The notes under the pieces were generated by a model that saw nothing but the letters and a program-made list of their open reading frames with translations, ran no database searches and was not told where the DNA came from. A DNA stretch of 43,977 nt from Prasinococcaceae sp. CCMP 1430 (Eukaryota > Plantae > Prasinodermophyta): positions 86,029-130,005 of the forward strand of contig RQSC01000018.1 in assembly GCA_013416795.1 (NCBI GenBank), given 5' to 3'. Both the position numbers and the translations under genes were made by a program. Positions 8,502-39,902 of the stretch are shown in pieces. How positions within the stretch are numbered: position 1 is the stretch's first letter; each line of letters starts with the position of its first letter.

Positions 8502-10537
8502 CTACGGCGCGTGATTCATGCTCTTCATGTTCTTGACGCTCGTATCGATCTTGAGCAGCTCGCGGAGGCACATAGTGGCGTAGCACGACGGCGGCAGCGT
8601 GAAGCTCACGCGAAGCGCCTGGTATCGGCTGCCCTCCGCGCTGGCAGCGCCGCTCGTCTGCCGCTGCTGGCCATTCTCACCCCCTGGCTCCTCCTCCTCG
8701 TCCTCCCGCTTCTGCCCCTCTTCCGCCGTGTTTTCCTGGTTCACCCCATCGAGCGCGAGGGACGGCTGCTGCGTCTGCCCGGCCCCCCCGTCCGCGCCCC
8801 TACCTTGCCGCCCCTGCTCCTGCGTCCGCGCCCCCTCGCCGCCGGCGTCGAGCGACTGCCCGAGCGTGTCGAAGTTAGTGGGCGTGATGTCGGCCTTGGG
8901 GTCATCGTAGCCCACGATCTCGAAGCTGAAGTCCGCGGGGCGCACGAGCAGCTTGCGATAGGCGCCTGGATTGCCGTGCACGGAGTACTCGCGCACGGCG
9001 TGCGGCGCAGGCTTGCTGACGTCCAGCTCGACGCCCGCCTCGGCCGCCAGCGCCTTGTACACCTGCGCGACCTCGTTGGCCGGGAGGCGCGTGGCCGCGC
9101 CCGCCAGAGGCAGCACAACGCGGCTGGCGGGCACGCTGCCCGCCGCGGCCTCCTCGGCGGTCACCAGGCGCACCTCGGGGATGCCCGTGAGCGGCGGCTT
9201 GCCGCCGCCGTCCTCGGCCGCGAGCACCAGGTCGCCCTCGGCTGCCAGCTCGAGGCCGTACAGCTCGGCGCGCCGCGAGGCGGCCGCGTTCCACAGGTAC
9301 GACTGAAATGCGTGCACGTACATTGAGCGCAGCGTGCGCGGCAGCGCGGCGAGCGCCCCCACGAAGTCGTTGGAGCGCGCGCCGCCGCACTTCTGCAGTC
9401 CGCGCAGCAGCGAGCGCTCCGCGAGCATCCAGCGCGGCATCGCCTCTATGGCGGCCGCCAGGCACGCGTCGCTGCCGTCGCCGTCGGCGTACACGCGGCG
9501 CGCGGCGGTGGCCTCGGGGTGCTCCCCCTCGCGCGGCCTCAGGATGAGGTCGGCGGCGCCCGCCCAGTCGCCCTTCAGCAGCGCGGCGCCGACAGTGTGC
9601 GTGGCCACCGCGCCCGTGCCGAAGCGCTGCAGCCCGAAGTAGTTCACGAAGCCGCTCGCGGCGAGCGCGCGCGACGCCTCGTCGACGCGCGCGCGCACGG
9701 CGGCCGCGTCGGCGGCGCCCGGCGCAGCGAGGCTGCGCAGCGTGATGGTGAAGCGGTTGCCGCTGAGCGCGCCCAGCGGCAGCGCGCGCTTGGCCTCGCT
9801 GAAGTTGCCCAGCCGCACGCCGCGCAGCCGGCTGTTGAGCCCCGCGAGCGCGCGCGCGTCGACGCGCTCGGCCGTCACCCACTGGCAGGTGACCGCGCGC
9901 TTGTCTTTGGTGCCCGCGAAGGCGAAGGCGGCGGGCGGCTTGTGCACGTAGCGCGCGATGAGCGCGATGGTCTCCTGCGTGTCCATGTTGCGCTTGAGCA
10001 GCGCGAAGCGCGTGTAGCGCGCCCCGCGGGGGCCGCCGGCGCCGCGCTTGCGCTTGCGGTTGCCGTTCGCGCCGGCCACGCCGCGGAAGACCTCGAGCTC
10101 GTGGTCGGCGGCAGACGAGTCCAGGAACGGCAGGCGCTCTCGGATGACGCCGTGCACGCGCCCGCGCGTCTGCTTGTCCGCGACCTTGCCCAGCGACACG
10201 CGCCGGTCCGCCGCGGCGTCCGGGGCGCGCAGCTCGAGCACGAGCGCGCGCACGCGCGCGGCGGCGTCGGAGCCGACGAGGGCGTCGAGCTCGNNNNNNN
10301 NNNNNNNNNNNNNNNNNNNNNNNNNNNNNNNNNNNNNNNNNNNNNNNNNNNNNNNNNNNNNNNNNNNNNNNNNNNNNNNNNNNNNNNNNNNNNNNNNNNN
10401 NNNNNNNNNNNNNNNNNNNNNNNNNNNNNNNNNNNNNNNNNNNNNNNNNNNNNNNNNNNNNNNNNNNNNNNNNNNNNNNNNNNNNNNNNNNNNNNNNNNN
10501 NNNNCACGCCCGCGACGCCCGCCGCCGCCGCCGCCAT
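8502..10537 (-). CDS. PUS7: TruD-family pseudouridine synthase PUS7 (interrupted by the N gap; probable start MAAAAAGVAGV at 10537)
   Basis: Catalytic FAGTKDKRAVT, GNRFTITLR, GFVNYFGLQRFG, YVHAFQSYLWN, FTLPPSCYATMCLRE. The ORF runs into the gap; the start beyond the gap is inferred. Confidence 0.92.
10294..10504. other. Assembly gap (211 N)
   Basis: Run of N. Further single-N joins at 10952, 39903 and 43126. Confidence 0.99.
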
Positions 10538-11325: not shown

Positions 11326-13241
11326 GTCGCGCGACGGCCAGCGGCGACGCGGAAACCGCCGTCGTCGAGGGGGCACAGCAGGGGCAGCGGGGCGAGCAGC
11401 GCAAGCAGGGGAAGAAGCAGCAGGGCAGCAAGGGCGGCAAGGGCGGCAAGGCGGCCGCCGAGGCGGAGGCGAAGCCGGTGGTGCCCGTGGAGCTGCCCAC
11501 CAACGAGTCGAGCGACCGCCTGCTGAGGCTGCGCCACACGAGCTCGCACGTGATGGCCATGGCCGTGCAGAAGCTCTACCCCGGCGCGCAGGTGACCATC
11601 GGCCCGTGGATCGACAACGGCTTCTACTACGACTTCGACGTGCCCGAGGGCACCGAGCTCAACCTCAAGAAGATCAAGAAGCGGATGGACCGCATCATCG
11701 CGCAGAAGCTGCCGCTCGTGCGCGAGGAGGTCAGCCGCGAGGAGGCGCGCGCGCGCATCACCGCGCTGGGCGAGCCCTACAAGCTCGAGATCCTCGACTC
11801 CATCGAGTCGGAGCCCATCACCATCTACCACTGCGGCGACGAGTGGTGGGACCTGTGCGCCGGGCCGCACGTTGAGCACACGGGCGAGCTCAACAAGCAC
11901 ACCATCGCCCTGGAGAGCACGGCGGGCGCCTACTGGCGCGGCGACGCCGACAAGGCCATGCTGACGCGCATCTACGGCACGGCGTGGGAGACGCCCGAGC
12001 AGCTGGCGTACGCCGCGCACCTGCGCGAGGAGGCCGCGCGCCGCGACCACCGCGCGCTGGGCAAGGCGCTCGACCTGTTCTCCATCCAGCAGGAGAGCGC
12101 CGGCGGCGGCCTGGTCTTCTGGCACCCCAAGGGCGCGCTCATGCGCCACCAGATCGAGGACTACTGGAAGCAGATGCACTTCGCCGACGGCTACGAGCTG
12201 GTGTACACGCCGCACGTGGCCAAGCTCGACATGTGGAAGACGAGCGGCCACTTTGACTTCTACGCGGAGAACATGTTCGACCAGATGGCCATCGAGGACG
12301 AGACCTACCAGCTGCGCCCCATGAACTGCCCCTTCCACGTGGCCATCTACAAGTCGGCGCCGCGCTCCTACCGCCAGCTGCCGCTGCGCTGGGCGGAGCT
12401 GGGCACCGTGTACCGCTACGAGAAGAGCGGCACCATGCACGGCCTCTTCCGCGTGCGCGGCTTCACGCAGGACGACGCGCACATCTTCTGCCTGCCCGAG
12501 CAGATCGAGGGGGAGATCCTGCGCGTGCTCAACCTCACCGAGGCCATCCTCTCCAACTTCGGCTTCGAGAAGTACGAGATCAACCTCAGCACGCGGCCCG
12601 AGAAGAGCGTGGGCGAGGACGCCATCTGGGAGAAGGCCACCGCGGGCCTGGTGGCCGCGCTGGAGGCCAAGGGGTGGGACTACGTGGTGGACGAGGGCGG
12701 CGGCGCCTTCTACGGCCCCAAGATCGACCTCAAGATCCAGGACGCCATCGGGCGCAAGTGGCAGTGCTCGACCATCCAGCTTGACTTCAACCTGCCGGAG
12801 CGCTTCGACATGAGCTACGTCGACAGCACCGGCGCCAAGGAGCGCCCCATCATGATCCACCGCGCCATCTTCGGCTCGCTGGAGCGCTTCTTCGGCATCC
12901 TGGTCGAGAACTACGCCGGCGACTTCCCCATCTGGATGGCGCCCGAGCAGTGCCGGCTGCTGCCCGTCTCGGACGCCGCCGCGGCGTACGCCGAGGCGGT
13001 GGCCGCCAAGCTGCGCGCGCGGGGGGTGCGCGTGAGCGTCGGCGGCGGCGAGCGGCTCGCCAAGCTCATCCGCAACGCCGAGATTGCCAAGGTGCCCGTG
13101 GTGGGCGTCGTCGGCGCGCGCGACGAGGAGGCGGGCGAGGTCAGCGTGCGCACACGCGCGGACGGCGAGCTCGGCGCGCTCAAGGTGGACGAGCTCGTCG
13201 AGCGACTGGCGGCGGCGGCGACGAGCAAGGGCGCGTTCTGA
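11326..13241 (+). CDS. thrS: Threonyl-tRNA synthetase, organellar (cyanobacterial/plant EMB2761-like); 5' exon not identified
   Basis: RHTSSHVMAMAVQKL, TIGPWIDNGFYYDF, DLCAGPHV, RDHRALGK, LRPMNCPFH, RVRGFTQDDAHIF, GAFYGPKID, IHRAIFGSLERF. The frame is open back to a tgcag acceptor at 11325. Confidence 0.95.
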
Positions 13242-14552
13242 GCCGCCCGGGTGGGGGGGGGGCGAAAGGCGCCGCAGGCGAGGCGGGGCGAGGCGAGGCC
13301 AGCTGGAGCGCGCGCGCGGCCTGCGGTCGCGCGGTGGGGAGCGCCCGGCGCGCACCCACAGTACCATAACCATATCCTGTTTGTTTTCTCCCTCGTCGAG
13401 CGCCTGCGCCTGCGCGCCGGTGGCTTGGCGCGGGCGGGCGCCGCGCGGGCGAACCGAACCCCAGCCGAATCCATACAGAGCCTCTGCAGCAGGAAACTGA
13501 CGAAAAGGGGCCGCCCGGTTTCGATGCGGGGTGCCTCATCAGATCAGCGGACGCGCCGCCCCGCAGCGGGCACCGCGGCGCATCATGGATGGGGGCCGCG
13601 CGCTCGGTCGGGGAACGCGCGCATGCAATTCCATATCAAAAAAAAAAAGAGCGCGGACGGTCGCGCGCGCGGCCGCAAAAAAATAAGGACAGCAAAAAAC
13701 CAGCCTCACGCGGTCTTCCAGTGTAGTCACGCAACACAGTACTAACCGCGCCGAATCAGGCTTAACTAGCAGGGATCGGACGTGTCCTGGTGCTTTCCTG
13801 ATCGTATGAAGGCTGGATGGCAGCGGAGCGAAAATGTCGGTATATGAATGTGTCGTTTCAGTACTTCCGATTGATACGAGCGTGGGGAGCGACTCGTCGC
13901 GGGGCGAGCATCTGGCTTACTGCTGTACCTCCCCGAGTCTGCGCGTCCCGGCGATGGCGGGCGGCTGGCCCCTTCCGCCCGCCTTGGGATGCCGTCGGGC
14001 CGGCCAGCGGCCGCGCCCCGGCCGCGGCCGACGGTCGGGGAACGCCCCGGGCGGACGTCGCCCCCCCCCCCGCCCCCCCTTCCCCCTGTGCGCGCTCGCG
14101 CTCGCTCGTGCACGTCTGGCGCCCCCGGGGAAGGCGGGCCGCTCGCTCGCTCGCGCCGTACGAACACGAGCGCGAACGCGCGCTCGCCCGCGCCCCCCCC
14201 TCCCCCCCTCCCATCTCTTTGAACGAGGACTCATCTCCGATGGAAAAAAAGAATGGCCGTGTCGACTCGAATCATCTCAGACACGCGCTTGTGCCCACGG
14301 GCGACGCAGACACAGCTGAACGTCCCCCGACGCGACGTTTTTTTTTGAAAATACAACACACACAGGGTCACACACACGCCATCCTTTTTCTGTCGGCGTG
14401 CAGAGGCAGGGCCTGCGCGCGCGCCGCCGCCGGCAGGCAGCTTCGCAGGCCGAGTTTTTTTTATTTTTATTTTTTTATTTTTTTGGGCGATGAAAAGGGC
14501 GTCCAGCAATGCGGTTTGACGTCGGTTTTGGCGTGCGCGGAAAAAAAAACGC

Positions 14553-14557
14553 AAAAA
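14553..14557 (-). terminator. RNA polymerase III T-tract terminator for the tRNA
   Basis: TTTTT on the minus strand 8 nt downstream of the discriminator base. Confidence 0.7.
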
Positions 14558-14565
14558 GGAAGGCC

Positions 14566-14708
14566 TGTCCCACGCGGGGCTCGAACCCGCGGCTTGGAGC
14601 TTTTTCGAACGAATCGCAAAGATTTCGGGGTCATAAGGCTCCCAGTGAAGGACCCGGATGCGGCGAGAAAACGATCGGGGTCGCTCTGACCAACTGAGTT
14701 AGTGGGAC
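14566..14708 (-). tRNA. trnI-UAU: tRNA-Ile(UAU) with two introns (about 14681-14643 at position 25/26-26/27; about 14631-14602 at 37/38)
   Basis: Removing 39 and 30 nt gives a 74-nt cloverleaf: GTCCCAC/GTGGGAC acceptor, D-loop AGTTGGTCA, GGAGC-CTTATGA-GCTCC anticodon arm, GCGGG-TTCGAGC-CCCGC T-arm, discriminator A. Confidence 0.85.
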
Positions 14709-15639
14709 GCGGACGGCGGCGGCGTAAAGGCCGCGAAACATCCGGGACCTGGAAAACTCAGCGCCCAGACCGCGCGCGGCAGCGACGCCGCAGCTTTCCA
14801 ATGGACAAGAGAGTTTAGGTTTGGGAAACTTATGGGGATACAAACGTGCTCACTTTTCATGTCAAAGTGAACGCACGCGGACGTCCTAACCCTTCCATGA
14901 ACCCCAACTTGCCGCGATGCGGCGCGCCTGTCGGGGTGCTCGCCCGTGGGTAAAAATTATATGGATTTAACAGGAGCGTGTTCTTGTGGTGTGCGGCGCG
15001 CCGTGCTGCGCGCGGCGCGCGATCCGCGCGCGCGGGGATCTCCATCGGGGGGCAGGGAGAGGCCCACGCGCGCCGATCGGCTGCGAAAAACGGCGCCGCG
15101 CGGCGGGGGAGGGCCCAGCGGGCGCGGCGCCCGCTTCGTCCGCGCGAGGGCCCGCGGAGCGCACGAGCGAAACGGCGCGCCACCCGCGAGGTAGCGTGGT
15201 CCGGCGCAAGGCGCCGGGGGGGCGTTGCACGGGACGCGCGGGCATGAAAGTCATCCGTTTCCCGTTCCGTTCCGGCGGGCGACGGCCGGCGGCGACGGCG
15301 GCGGTGCTGCTGCAGATGCCGCGGCGGCGGCTCGCAGTGGCGCGCCGCCGCGCGCGTATGGCGTCGTTTGGCGCCATCAGGACGCACCGGCACGTCGCGG
15401 AGCCGCGCGGGGAAACGCACGTTGACCGCGGGACCCGCGCCGCCCCGCGACGGTGTGTGGGTGTGGGTGCGGGTGTGGGTGTGGGGCGGGCCGGTTGGGG
15501 GAGGGGAGGGGGGCTTGGGGGCTTGGGGGGGGGGGGAGGGCGTGTTCCGGATGGCAGGGGTCGCGGCTGACAGGCCAAGCGCTGCTCGGCTCTTGGCGCC
15601 ACTCTGCCGCTGGGTTCCGTCCCTGCGCAGATCGCGGCC

Positions 15640-26473: not shown

Positions 26474-29082
26474 TCAGTGTCTGCCGTACACTCCCGCCTG
26501 CGCGCCCTCGCCGTACTCGATGTCGAAGCCGCCCGCGCCAGCGTCGAGCGCGGCGCGCAGTTGTGACGCCGGCACATCCAGCGCGAGCGTGTACGGGGTG
26601 CCGCCGTCACCGAAGTCCAGCGCGAGTACCGCCTCGGGGCTGCGCGGACGGGCCGCGTACGGCGCAGAGGGCCGCTGGTCAGCAGCATGCCACCGCCTTG
26701 CACGTGCATGCGCAGGCACGCGCGAGCACGCGCGCGGACGCGCAGTGCCCGCGTCCGCGGGTCAACGCACCTGTAGTCCGCTCCGCCAACCTCCAGTTTC
26801 TCCACCTGTGCGTCCTTGGCCTCGGCAAAGCCAACCCGCACGCCCGCGCTCCCCCCTGCCGCGTGTCGCTCCTTGGGCAGAGGCACGGTGCCATGCGGCA
26901 CATGGTTGAGCCACACGTTGGCCAAGAACGTCACGCGCCGTTGGCCCTGCTGTGGCGCGCCCTCCTGACCAATGAGCAGATCGCTGGTGGCGCCGTGCAG
27001 TAAGCGGCCGTCGAAGGACAGGTGGCGAAGCTCCTGCGGGTAGCACAGCGAGGCGCGGCGGACCGCGCCCTGGATTGCACCCCCCGCGGCCTCGGGTGAC
27101 GCGCGGTCGACGACAACGGTCGGCCCGCCGTGCGATGTGAGATAGGTGACCGTGCCGAGGTGAGGGCACACGCACACGCCGCCTTCGCTCTCGAGCGTGT
27201 AGTCGCGGTCAAAATGGAACTGAATGTCGTCGCCTGCATCGAGGTCCTGCGCCAATGCACACGTGTCAGCAGCGGTGGGCGCCTCTCATGCGAGGCGCAA
27301 CGGTGGATATGCGCGCGCACTTCTGACGCCCTTCCGAGCACGTACCTGCACCCACCACTCCACCCCCGAACGATCCCGGTCGAATGTGGCTGCCGCCGTG
27401 TGCAGCTCGAAAATGTCGAGCGCGAGGCGCTCCAGATCGCACGCGGGCGCGTCGTCGGCGCCTACCCAGAAGGTCATACCCTGCGACAGGTACTCGCCGC
27501 CCTCCTCGTCGACGGCACTCGCGACTGCGCCGCCGGCGGCACCGCGCCCACCGAGATCGAGCGCGAAGGACGCGAGCTGCGCGGCGATGGCGGCCTTCGC
27601 AGCCGCGGCTTTTTCACCTTGTGACCCACTGCGGATCGCCGTCGCGTAGTCCATTGACCCTCCCACACCCGCTGTGCGCCCGTCGGCGTCGAGCACCAGC
27701 TCGAAGCCCTCGCTCTCGCTCTCGTCCTCGCAGCTGTCGTCTTCGTCCCCGCTGCCGCCACTGTCGCTCTCGCCAGCACTCTCGTTGTGATCCCCGGCAC
27801 CGCCCGCACCCGCCTCGCCCTCGTCGGCGGCCGGCTGCTGGCACGTGATGCAATGCACGTTGCCACCTCCCACGGCGATGGCCCTCCCCAAGGAAATAGG
27901 CACGACTTGCCTGCCCGGGAAAAGCTCCCCGAGCTTCGCCAGTGCGGCTTTGTCGCTGTCAGGCTGGCCGAACTGTGGGACGAGCACACCGCCCTCTCCG
28001 CGGTCCGGGTTCGAGCCACGTGCGAGGTAGAAGTTCACGTAGCTCGCGCAGAGGTCGTCGCCCGCGTGGCGTGCTGCCGCCTCGCTCGTGTTTTCGATCG
28101 CCCCCGCTTCGTCCTCGCTCAGCGTGAGCCTGCGTGGCAAGTGCAGCAGGTGCACCTCGAGCCTCCTCCCCCGTGCGTCGGTCGCCTCTTCGAGCGCCCC
28201 CCTGGCGCTCCTCACGCTGGCGTAGTCGGTGTCCGCCTCGTCGTCGGTCCACGCGAGCACGACTTTGCCAGGCGCCACAAATGCGGCGATGTTGTCGACA
28301 TGGCCATCAGTGTCCCAGTCGGACTTGAGGCCCGATGGAAGCCAGATGGCCTTCTCCACGCCGAGGTGCTCGCGCAACGCGTGCTCCAGCTGCACCCTCG
28401 TGCGTGGCTGTCCCTTGGTCGGAAGGTCGATGTTGCGGTTAGGGTTGAGTAGGCAACTCTCCGTGACGAGCGCGGTGCCCTCGCCGTCCACGTGCACGCT
28501 GCCACCCTCGAGCACGAGCTGCGGCCGCCGAACGAGCGCGCTCGGAACGCCGCCGAGCTCTGCCACAAGCCCGCCGACCGCGTCATCGAGAGCATGCGAC
28601 GAGTAGCACTTCTCGCCCCACGCGTTGAAGCGCCAGCACACGGCCCCGCGCGATGCCGCGAGGCTGCGCTTGCGTTTGGCTCCGGCGGCGGCCTGGAGCC
28701 GAAGTGGGCGAGCGAGGCGCGCGGGGCCAGCGTTAGCGTCAGGCCCGCCGCGACTACGCATGGCGCGCGCGCGGGCTGCGCGTGCGAACACACCTCAGTG
28801 CGTCGCACGACGAAGGTCGGTGCAGTGTCGCGGAACCAGGCGTCGTCCTGCGGCACCACGCGCACGCGCACGTTGTCCGGGGCGCCCGCGGCTGCCAGCG
28901 TGGCGCGCGCGTCCTCGGCCGCCGCCTCGTCCGGAGCACACACGCACACCTCGTCCTCGAAGCGCGCGGCGGCCGCGGCGACCTGCGCGAACGCCGCGAG
29001 GCATCACATAGCCCTCGGCCATCCCAGCGCAACCGCGCAGCCGCCGCGCCGCCGGCCGCGCGCACAGTGGCGCGGCCGCCAC
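26474..29082 (-). CDS. AIH: Agmatine deiminase (PAD_porph) fused to a C-terminal 2OG-Fe(II)-oxygenase-like domain; exons about 29082/29022-28794 (frame break near 28998), 28692-27346, 27246-26771, 26639-26474
   Basis: DDAWFRDTAPTF, WRFNAWG, LEGGSVHVDGEGT, NPNRN, DTDGHVDN, CASYVNFY, GGGNVHCITCQQP; the same exon continues into a second domain; three GT-AG introns join in frame. Confidence 0.85.
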
Positions 29083-30262: not shown

Positions 30263-30644
30263 GGCGGCCGCTGCAGGCGCGCGCCTCGACCATCGCCGGG
30301 CGCCGCGCGGCAGCGGCCGCAGCCGCATCGGCGCGGGTCGGTCTTCCTCCCCTTCCACGCGGCTCCACGCGCGAGCGCTACCTTGCGGAGCGGGTGGGTG
30401 AGGAGGGGGGCTGGCGTGCGTGTGGTGGTGGCGATGGTGGTGCGTGTGTGTGTTTGTTGTTGTTGTTGTTGGGGGGGGGGGGGGGGGGGGGGGGCAGCCA
30501 CCGCGCCGGCCGCAGTGAGCGCGCGGACTGGCGCGTTCGAGAACGCAAATGCGTGCGCGCTCTCGTGTACGCACTTGCTTGATGCGCAGCCGGACGCGGC
30601 AGAGCGCGCCGCCGGCGCGCCACCCGCGTGGGGCGCCGGCGGCA

Positions 30645-31415
30645 ATGCGACTTGCGGTGGCGGTGGCTCTCGCCGTGGTGCTCGCCCGCCAGTGCAGCGC
30701 GGGCCCGGCCGCGCGGCGCCGGCGGCGCACACGCGGCAGCAGCGGCGGCGCGAATGGCGCTTCTGAGGCTGGGGCGGAGGCGTCGACAGACTCGACGCCA
30801 AAGGCTGGCGGCGGCAACGGCGGTGGGGACGCTGCCGCCGCTGCCGCGGATGCGCCGGTGTCGAAGGCGTACACGAGCACGGTGGCGATGATACCCCCCG
30901 ACGAGGCGTGGCCCGCCATCCAGGCGGCGCGCTACGCGCTGCGCGACCGCGGGCTATGGCGATGGCCACCGCACGTCAACTTGCTCTACCCGTTCGCGCC
31001 CGCGGCGGCCTCGGCGACGCCCCGACTCATCGCCGCGCTCGCCGCCGCCGCGGCGCGCGTCGAGCCCTTCGACGTGCACCTCGAGGCCTTCGAGCACTTC
31101 GAGCACAAGTACAGCGCCACGCTGTGGCTCGACCCGCGCACCGAGCCGCCGGGCGCGCTCGACGCGCTGCAGAGCGCGCTACAGTCGGCCGCGCCCGCGT
31201 ACCACGAGCAGCGCAGCGTGCACAACGGCGGCGACGCGCGCGGCCGCTTCGTGCCTCACATGAGCGTCGCGCACCTCTCCTCGGCGAGCGAGGCGCGCGA
31301 GGCGGGCGAGCGGCTCGCGCGTGACTGGAAGCCCGTGAGCTTTCGCGTCGACGAGGTGCGTGTGGTGGAGCGATCGATCGTCGCTCCACGAGCCGGACTC
31401 GTGCGCACCCGCTGA
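30645..31415 (+). CDS. 2H phosphoesterase (2'-5' RNA ligase-like superfamily) with N-terminal targeting peptide
   Basis: MIPPDEAWPAIQ...RWPPHVNLLYPF and FVPHMSVAH 2H motifs; LQSAL segment; hydrophobic N-terminus MRLAVAVALAVVLA. Confidence 0.78.
   Translation: MRLAVAVALAVVLARQCSAGPAARRRRRTRGSSGGANGASEAGAEASTDSTPKAGGGNGGGDAAAAAADAPVSKAYTSTVAMIPPDEAWPAIQAARYALRDRGLWRWPPHVNLLYPFAPAAASATPRLIAALAAAAARVEPFDVHLEAFEHFEHKYSATLWLDPRTEPPGALDALQSALQSAAPAYHEQRSVHNGGDARGRFVPHMSVAHLSSASEAREAGERLARDWKPVSFRVDEVRVVERSIVAPRAGLVRTR

Positions 31416-39168: not shown

Positions 39169-39902
<734 letters not shown>

Follow-up and report, generated by a model that had tools for sequence, protein, structure and literature searches.

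A tRNA-Ile(UAU) gene split by two introns, one ectopic and one at the canonical position, is the best reading of a 143-nt segment on the minus strand (14708 to 14566) of the DNA analysed here, a stretch of 43,977 nucleotides hereafter called the window. Its tRNA becomes visible when two inserts, of 39 and 30 nt, are removed: what is left is a clean 74-nt cloverleaf that ARAGORN calls tRNA-Ile(tat), as the first-pass annotation of this DNA had proposed. We consider it probable, at roughly 70%, that this is a genuine and functional two-intron nuclear gene of Prasinoderma coloniale. A functional gene is favoured because ARAGORN recognizes it once the inserts are out, with every stem and every invariant base preserved, and because its middle exon is beyond chance expectation (0.2-1.4%) and provides the only arm that joins the T arm. 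Two T runs (T5 and T9) stand directly downstream in a 70% GC genome, with a 5S rRNA gene nearby, and the second insert sits exactly at 37/38, in the tRNA species that has the pseudouridylation intron in yeast; both observations argue in the same direction. So do the half bulge-helix-bulge (BHB) motif found in one register of intron 1, the same register that restores the A10-U25 pair, the use of AUA codons at a low level, and the occurrence of unspliced copies in RNA libraries. Finally, there is a precedent in Cyanidioschyzon merolae, where introns in the D stem, at 37/38 and in the T loop are spliced in vivo.

Structure of the tRNA-Ile(UAU) gene

Excision of precursor positions 28-66 (39 nt) and 78-107 (30 nt) left 74 nt that were folded by ARAGORN as tRNA-Ile(tat), and the same call was returned for the spliced product in all four junction registers (4/4). 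In this product all pairs are formed in the acceptor (7/7), anticodon (5/5) and T (5/5) stems. The invariant bases U8, A14, G18, G19, U33, G53-U54-U55-C56, A58 and C61 are all kept, the variable loop has 5 nt, and the D loop conforms to the consensus. By the ARAGORN results in the four registers, the spliced form is a class I elongator tRNA. Its identity as an isoleucine tRNA is indicated by the UAU anticodon together with the discriminator A73; base 37 is a G in the canonical register. None of the marks of a pseudogene, i.e. disabling substitutions in stems or at invariant bases and loss of the terminator, was found in this gene, whose sole oddities are G37 and the missing anticodon-intron pair. 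As in the disrupted genes of the C. merolae and Chondrus crispus type, removal of the ectopic insert restores a canonical tRNA. The features of the gene are collected in Table 1.

Table 1. Coordinates, in the window, of the tRNA-Ile(UAU) gene, its predicted exons and introns, and its 3' flank.
Feature	Position	Strand	Remarks
Whole tRNA-Ile(UAU) gene	14566..14708	-	Mature 5' end G1 at 14708, A73 at 14566; ARAGORN on spliced form
Exon 1, tRNA positions 1-24	14684..14708	-	Acceptor 5' strand, D-stem 5' strand, D-loop, G22-A23-G24
A-box-like TAACTCAGTTGG, in exon 1	14701-14690	-	
Intron 1, ectopic, 39 nt, preferred register 24/25 (D-stem 3' strand)	14645..14683	-	Helix h, bulge, 2 bp of H
Exon 2, positions 25-37	14632..14644	-	U25, G26, GGAGC stem strand, C32 U33, U34 A35 U36, G37
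Intron 2, 30 nt, 43% GC, canonical 37/38	14602..14631	-	ARAGORN -i once intron 1 is removed
Exon 3, positions 38-73	14566..14601	-	A38, anticodon stem 3' strand, variable loop (G46, C48), T arm, acceptor 3' strand, A73
B box GGTTCGAGCCC, T arm of exon 3	14587-14577	-	
GACCCCGA copy 1, 5' end of intron 1	14675..14682	-	Its GACCC forms helix h
GACCCCGA copy 2, across exon 2/intron 2 junction	14625..14632	-	G37, then ACCCCGA
Pol III terminator-like T5 (14557-14553) and T9 (14549-14541)	14541..14557	-	9-25 nt beyond gene 3' end

The predicted ectopic intron

In a BHB each 3-nt bulge is reportedly cut between its second and third bases. Every register of the first insert was checked against this geometry (cut after bulge base 2, 3-nt bulges lying a 4-bp helix H apart, helices h and h' flanking). 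The hBHBh' motif is defined by two 3-nt bulges, a 4-bp helix between them, and flanking helices of 2 bp or more (PMC3728597). The only register with a BHB-type geometry is 24/25, in which the cut falls after precursor position 25. Here the insert folds on itself, as had been pointed out before, through a 5-bp helix h that pairs GACCC with GGGUC (14682-14678 with 14655-14651). The 5' site lies in a 3-nt bulge, AGC, cut between G and C, which is followed by the H pairs G22-C and A21-U only. Beyond these 2 bp there are two pyrimidine mismatches, and the 3' site has neither a defined bulge nor a helix h'. Compared with the relaxed hBH motif, intron 1 at 24/25 thus fits except that H has 2 pairs instead of 4. 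A half BHB motif of this kind was obtained in 0.29% of intron shuffles, counted over the four registers. The hairpin of intron 1 is moderately stable (-13.3 kcal/mol, z -1.67).

Register 24/25 also replaces C25 by U25, which gives a Watson-Crick A10-U25 pair, and the cloverleaf is then the minimum free energy (MFE) structure. The first-pass annotation had located this insert at 25/26, 26/27 or 27/28. These registers all give C25 opposite A10, hence an A10.C25 mismatch, their MFE structure is not the cloverleaf, and they do not show the BHB geometry that is found at 24/25; intron 1 would be shifted to 14644-14682 with 25/26 and to 14643-14681 with 26/27, exon 1 then extending to 14682. We place intron 1 at 24/25 because the half BHB occurs there alone, and because U25 repairs the A10 pair and makes the cloverleaf the MFE fold. 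In our structural models this is the only supported register, and the preferred position of the intron is therefore predicted to be within the 3' strand of the D stem, as given in Table 1.

The intron at position 37/38

The second insert is located directly 3' of position 37, at the canonical position, as detected by ARAGORN -i. The anticodon stem acts as its helix h' (5 bp) and the 3' site lies in a bulge of three A, cut after the second one; a relaxed HBh' motif is matched through the anticodon stem only. There is no helix h, and H has 2 of 4 pairs (U33-A and U34.G), a chance level that is matched by 41% of shuffles. Intron 2 is less structured than its shuffles (z +1.6) and has no stable fold. 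According to the anticodon-intron rule, position 32 is said to pair with the intron base three before the 3' site, thereby closing the 3-nt bulge. In the present gene C32 faces an A at that place, three positions before the 3' junction, and the pair is missing; that an insert at 37/38 would lack the G needed by C32 had been correctly seen in the first-pass annotation. The anticodon-intron (A-I) pair is named in a review (PMC4090602). Canonical splicing of intron 2 would leave G37. A37 would result if the junction were moved by one nucleotide, a register that the structure does not support. Isoleucine tRNAs are expected to carry t6A37 (PMC9602550). On the whole, intron 2 resembles a standard eukaryotic intron whose cleavage would be measured from the tRNA body, which is the way the eukaryotic endonuclease cuts canonical introns (PMC4090602). 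It is worth noting that tRNA-Ile(UAU) is the one tRNA species whose intron serves anticodon pseudouridylation in yeast (PMC4090602).

A strict BHB is absent at both inserts: intron 1 has an h of 5 bp, a bulge of 3 nt and 2/4 pairs in H, and intron 2 has an h' of 5 bp, a bulge of 3 nt and, again, 2/4 pairs in H. The archaeal-like, structure-driven splicing that had been suggested for this gene is not borne out in that form, given the lack of a strict BHB, the undefined 3' site of the first insert and the chance-level H of the second. When the whole precursor was scanned for strict BHB motifs, the best matches cut at unproductive places and the true junctions did not score above background, and a strict BHB was rejected.

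Terminator and RNA evidence

On the strand of the tRNA gene, runs of at least six T number 11 in the 44-kb window; besides the run behind the tRNA gene, three others directly follow a 5S rRNA gene (13699-13694, 13683-13677 and 13648-13638, minus strand). This 5S rRNA gene (13698-13817, minus strand; Rfam, 82 bits) follows the tRNA gene at a distance of 750 nt, and the two look like a small Pol III gene cluster. A T-rich low-complexity stretch (T8, T7 and T7 with single A between) is present on the plus strand at 14450-14490, just downstream of the terminator region of the tRNA gene.

The unspliced locus was found in two rRNA-depleted seawater metatranscriptomes, as one identical 151-nt contig in each. 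One contig (14560-14710) consists of the whole unspliced gene with 2 nt upstream and 6 nt downstream, and the other (14622-14772) includes intron 1 and 64 nt ahead of the mature 5' end. In both metatranscriptomes coverage is absent from 14300-14559, the 260 nt downstream of the gene, and from the upstream segment 14780-14875. No spliced or mature form and no exon joint appeared in either. These runs were chosen for containing words of the locus, and their contigs come from standard libraries, which are not expected to show a 74-nt mature tRNA. The unspliced contigs are weak evidence for a precursor, as carry-over of DNA or read-through transcription fits them as well. The culture transcriptome (X6) contains no sequence of the locus. 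In one metatranscriptome (X1), a contig corresponding to 14884-15000 is only 91% identical to the window (10 substitutions and 1 insertion in 117 nt). Present beside the identical contig of the tRNA gene, it could represent a diverged Prasinoderma relative or paralogous sequence in the sea.

A 23-mer of the 3' exon had 0 matches among the metagenome contigs. Orthologues were also sought with a pattern running from the D arm to the T loop, with inserts of 49-79 nt allowed, which had 0 matches in the viral contigs. Its only metagenome match (contig L001, 435-564, minus strand) was rejected, as it consists of two adjacent ordinary tRNA genes of an organism with 45% GC. No homologues of the locus were thus retrieved from the metagenome and viral contigs.

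Proposed processing and the possibility of a decaying gene

In a functional gene, Pol III would transcribe a tRNA-Ile(UAU) precursor broken by two protein-spliced introns. Intron 1 would form its own hairpin, with the 5' site in the 3-nt bulge between this hairpin and a 2-bp helix, i.e. a relaxed motif of the hBH/BHL type. Intron 2 would be unstructured, with its 3' splice site in a 3-nt A-rich bulge adjoining the anticodon stem. The tRNA splicing endonuclease may take out intron 1 first, in a body-independent and motif-driven mode, and intron 2 second, in the usual distance-measuring manner of eukaryotes, after which a tRNA ligase would join the exons into a 74-nt tRNA reading the rare AUA codon. 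Transcription by Pol III, splicing as such, the sequence of the two steps, the precise junctions and the enzymes involved are all inferred in this scheme.

Alternatively, the gene could be decaying or dead: an ordinary tRNA-Ile(UAU) gene with intron 2 would have been inactivated by a 39-nt insertion in its D arm, the loss being tolerated thanks to another copy or to tRNA-Ile(IAU), which bears inosine and can read AUA. We judge this unlikely, while giving it an appreciable share of the probability. It agrees with the lack of a strict BHB at both inserts, with G37 where A37 is expected, with a C32 deprived of its anticodon-intron pair, and with RNA contigs that represent the unspliced form; AUA being rare, selection on tRNA-Ile(UAU) may moreover be weak given tRNA-Ile(IAU). 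In reviews, moreover, single tRNA genes with D-arm inserts are treated as probable pseudogenes, except where no other copy exists (PMC4090602). However, a disabling substitution is seen at 0/74 exon positions, with perfect stems, conserved invariant bases and an intact terminator. A random insertion would also have to create a half BHB in one specific register that restores A10-U25 at the same time, the chance of which is about 0.3% x 1/4.

A word shared by both introns

The first-pass annotation had observed that both inserts follow a G and start with ACCCCGA in the registers it had chosen. This is confirmed, and with the G included the common 8-mer is GACCCCGA (Table 1). In the window, this word has 4 copies in 88 kb (both strands) versus about 3.6 expected, and the two copies outside the tRNA gene are inside coding regions. 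The chance of having identical 8-mers tied to both 5' junctions, as calculated from composition, is about 2e-5 to 1e-4, and this junction-linked coincidence is real. Beyond these 8 nt, no similarity was detected between the remaining parts of introns 1 and 2 (p ~0.45). In the best registers, the cut precedes the start of GACCCCGA by one base in intron 1 and follows it by one base in intron 2. In intron 1 the word belongs to helix h; in the predicted fold of intron 2 it is divided, with a 3-bp helix and a CCC bulge sharing its bases. Intron propagation, which had been deduced from the common start, is not supported as stated: only 8 nt are shared, the remainder is unrelated, and the motif stands at different offsets from the cuts. 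A spread of the intron from one site to the other may have taken place.

The two-intron gene could also be real and have its splice sites set by GACCCCGA itself, through recognition by a factor or a guide, with cuts immediately 5' of the word that would result in C25 (A10.C25) and A37. This would explain the presence of an identical 8-mer at both 5' junctions (chance ~1e-4) and the unrelated rest of the introns, as if the word alone had been kept, and a cut just before the word in intron 2 would yield the expected A37. In intron 1, however, the register before the motif has no structural support, with an A10.C25 mismatch and a non-cloverleaf MFE. Furthermore, GACCCCGA plays different parts in the two predicted folds, there are two instances only, and we know of no tRNA intron system with a sequence-specific 5' element. 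We regard such sequence-set sites as improbable.

Detection of the gene and chance resemblance

Standard tools do not report this gene. In the uncut locus ARAGORN found no tRNA, with its intron mode on or off, and the Rfam tRNA model gave no match even at E<=10, the neighbouring 5S rRNA alone being found. When insert 1 alone is removed, ARAGORN -i calls the gene with a 30-nt canonical intron; when insert 2 alone is removed, ARAGORN still calls no tRNA. The gene is hidden from scanners because of the ectopic insert 1, the removal of which is enough to restore the ARAGORN -i call. The expectation that default scanners would miss this gene is thus justified for ARAGORN and the Rfam tRNA model, both blind to the uncut locus. 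The numbers of tRNA genes obtained with standard scanners for the P. coloniale genome are probably too low.

The middle exon was evaluated by asking how frequently an 80-nt interior yields GGAGC followed by Y-U, three bases and a purine (11 nt). Such a perfect 5' half of an anticodon arm arises by chance in 0.2-0.9% of shuffles of the interior and in 0.3-1.4% of random 80-mers of the window. The arm provided by exon 2 is the only perfect partner of GCUCC that is contiguous with the variable loop and the T arm. Two other arms, GGGUC/GACCC (anticodon UCA) and a contiguous CAC arm, were considered and rejected, as they need three inserts or a pyrimidine at position 37 and are unconnected to the variable loop. 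The B box of exon 3 is the only one in a tRNA context within the 44-kb window; one other strict B-box match, at 28008 on the plus strand, is inside an agmatine deiminase ORF. A chance cloverleaf, in which GC-rich intergenic DNA without any tRNA gene is made tRNA-like by two chosen deletions, benefits from the added degrees of freedom of these free choices and from the abundance of random BHB-like matches in the precursor, yet it is extremely improbable in view of the 7-bp acceptor, consensus D loop and perfect T arm with B box held by exons 1 and 3 alone, the sole B box in a tRNA context in the window, a middle exon with p 0.002-0.014, and the terminator directly after the gene.

Comparison with other disrupted tRNA genes

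The closest known case to the putative two-intron gene is the nuclear tRNA-Ile(UAU) gene of C. merolae, which is interrupted in the D stem, at 37/38 and in the T loop by introns with strict hBHBh' motifs, all of them spliced in vivo (Soma et al. 2013, PMC3728597). Its 37/38 intron is the last to be removed (Nagato et al. 2022, PMC9602550). Both genes are nuclear, encode the same isoacceptor, combine D-stem and 37/38 introns, and are invisible to scanners, and in both the ectopic intron folds independently. The C. merolae gene differs by its three introns (the third in the T arm) with strict motifs, whereas the Prasinoderma gene has two, intron 1 having a half motif and intron 2 no motif beyond the anticodon stem and the bulge in place of a strict hBHBh'. 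Splicing was proven by RT-PCR in C. merolae and is predicted in Prasinoderma. An intron 5' word shared within the gene has not been reported for C. merolae, in contrast to GACCCCGA in Prasinoderma. C. merolae is a red alga, whereas Prasinoderma belongs to the Prasinodermophyta (green plants).

In the nuclear genome of C. crispus, validated tRNA introns are located in the D loop (20/21) or the T loop (58/59), and tRNA-Tyr and elongator tRNA-Met have two introns (PlantRNA 2.0 preprint, 10.1101/2021.12.21.473619). The likeness lies in the combination of a canonical and an ectopic intron in nuclear genes, and tRNAscan-SE mislabels the C. crispus genes as pseudogenes. The ectopic site differs, since it is predicted in the D stem (24/25) in Prasinoderma versus the D loop or T loop in C. 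crispus. According to what reviews relate of the Guillardia theta nucleomorph, ectopic introns, many of which lack a defined BHB, occur in its D, T and anticodon arms and are removed in vivo by an unknown route (Kawach et al. 2005, via PMC3978253, PMC4090602). These are 3-24 nt inserts in nucleomorph genes, whereas the Prasinoderma insert has 39 nt and is in the nucleus of a free-living alga. Archaeal tRNA genes reportedly have several BHB introns at non-canonical sites, and in Thermoproteales related intron sequences at different sites are said to have been read as transposition. The BHB motifs of the archaeal introns are strict, or relaxed but well defined, and similarity extends over the whole intron, in contrast to the 8 common nucleotides and the partial motifs seen here.

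In the green lineage, the picoalgae Ostreococcus and Micromonas have BHB-processed permuted tRNA genes, as cited in a review (Maruyama et al. 2010, via PMC3978253). Their tRNA genes are also non-standard, but circularly permuted and without the ectopic introns considered here. For green algae as a whole, a 2014 review describes permuted tRNA genes and 'almost no' ectopic introns (PMC3978253), and a 2026 review lists only red algae and O. tauri. Ectopic or multiple introns had been thought at first to be known from some prasinophytes; these algae are known instead for permuted tRNA genes. The literature examined, including the P. coloniale genome paper and its supplements, gives no account of nuclear tRNA introns in Prasinoderma. 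The two-intron tRNA-Ile(UAU) gene is thus without earlier report in this lineage, and its arrangement, with a D-stem and a canonical intron, has so far been described chiefly from red algae and archaea.

According to the textbook rule, the eukaryotic splicing endonuclease takes its measure from the tRNA body; nuclear tRNA introns at sites other than 37/38 run counter to this rule, and the proven cases are few, being those of two red algae and of nucleomorphs. If true, the D-stem intron of Prasinoderma would take the phenomenon into the third green-plant phylum. To our knowledge, no member of the deepest green-plant phylum other than P. coloniale has been sequenced. Its gene would offer a second tRNA-Ile(UAU) for direct comparison with that of C. 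merolae. The partial motifs would form a substrate set for what the endonuclease needs, as a good bulge is present only at the 5' site in intron 1 and only at the 3' site in intron 2. A bolder and rather doubtful extension is that P. coloniale has a genome-wide set of tRNA genes with ectopic and multiple introns, together with a splicing endonuclease that accepts partial or absent BHB motifs. If this were true, disrupted tRNA genes of red-algal or archaeal style would have been present at the base of Viridiplantae, perhaps of Archaeplastida, and GACCCCGA could be the mark of recent intron movement between sites or a new element of splice-site choice. The importance of the gene would rise with confirmation of a genome-wide pattern and of splicing.

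Host genome and neighbouring sequences

The ORF at 11478-13241 (plus strand) encodes an organellar-type threonyl-tRNA synthetase (ThrRS) that is 100% identical to EukProt PRCOL_00005026-RA, and the genome is therefore that of Prasinoderma coloniale. The second-best relative of this protein, on a 1.7-kb JGI contig, is 84% identical, and streptophytes come next at about 70%. The window has about 70% GC, and the P. coloniale genome 69.8% (PMC7455551). In the ThrRS gene, GC3 is 0.99 and the isoleucine codons are ATC (32), ATT (1) and ATA (0); AUA codons are present at a low level in the genes of the window. Two genes for enzymes of tRNA-processing type are found in the surroundings of the tRNA gene, probably by coincidence. 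The one within 6 kb, at 8502-10253 (minus strand), encodes a Pus7/TruD pseudouridine synthase; the one within 16 kb, at 30549-31415 (plus strand), encodes a LigT-like 2H phosphoesterase (2',5' RNA ligase superfamily). A T21 tract stands on the plus strand at 912-932, in otherwise 70% GC sequence. Finally, 733 uninterrupted C occupy positions 39170-39902, explain the 84% GC and the GC skew of -0.45 of their bin, and are most likely an assembly artefact.
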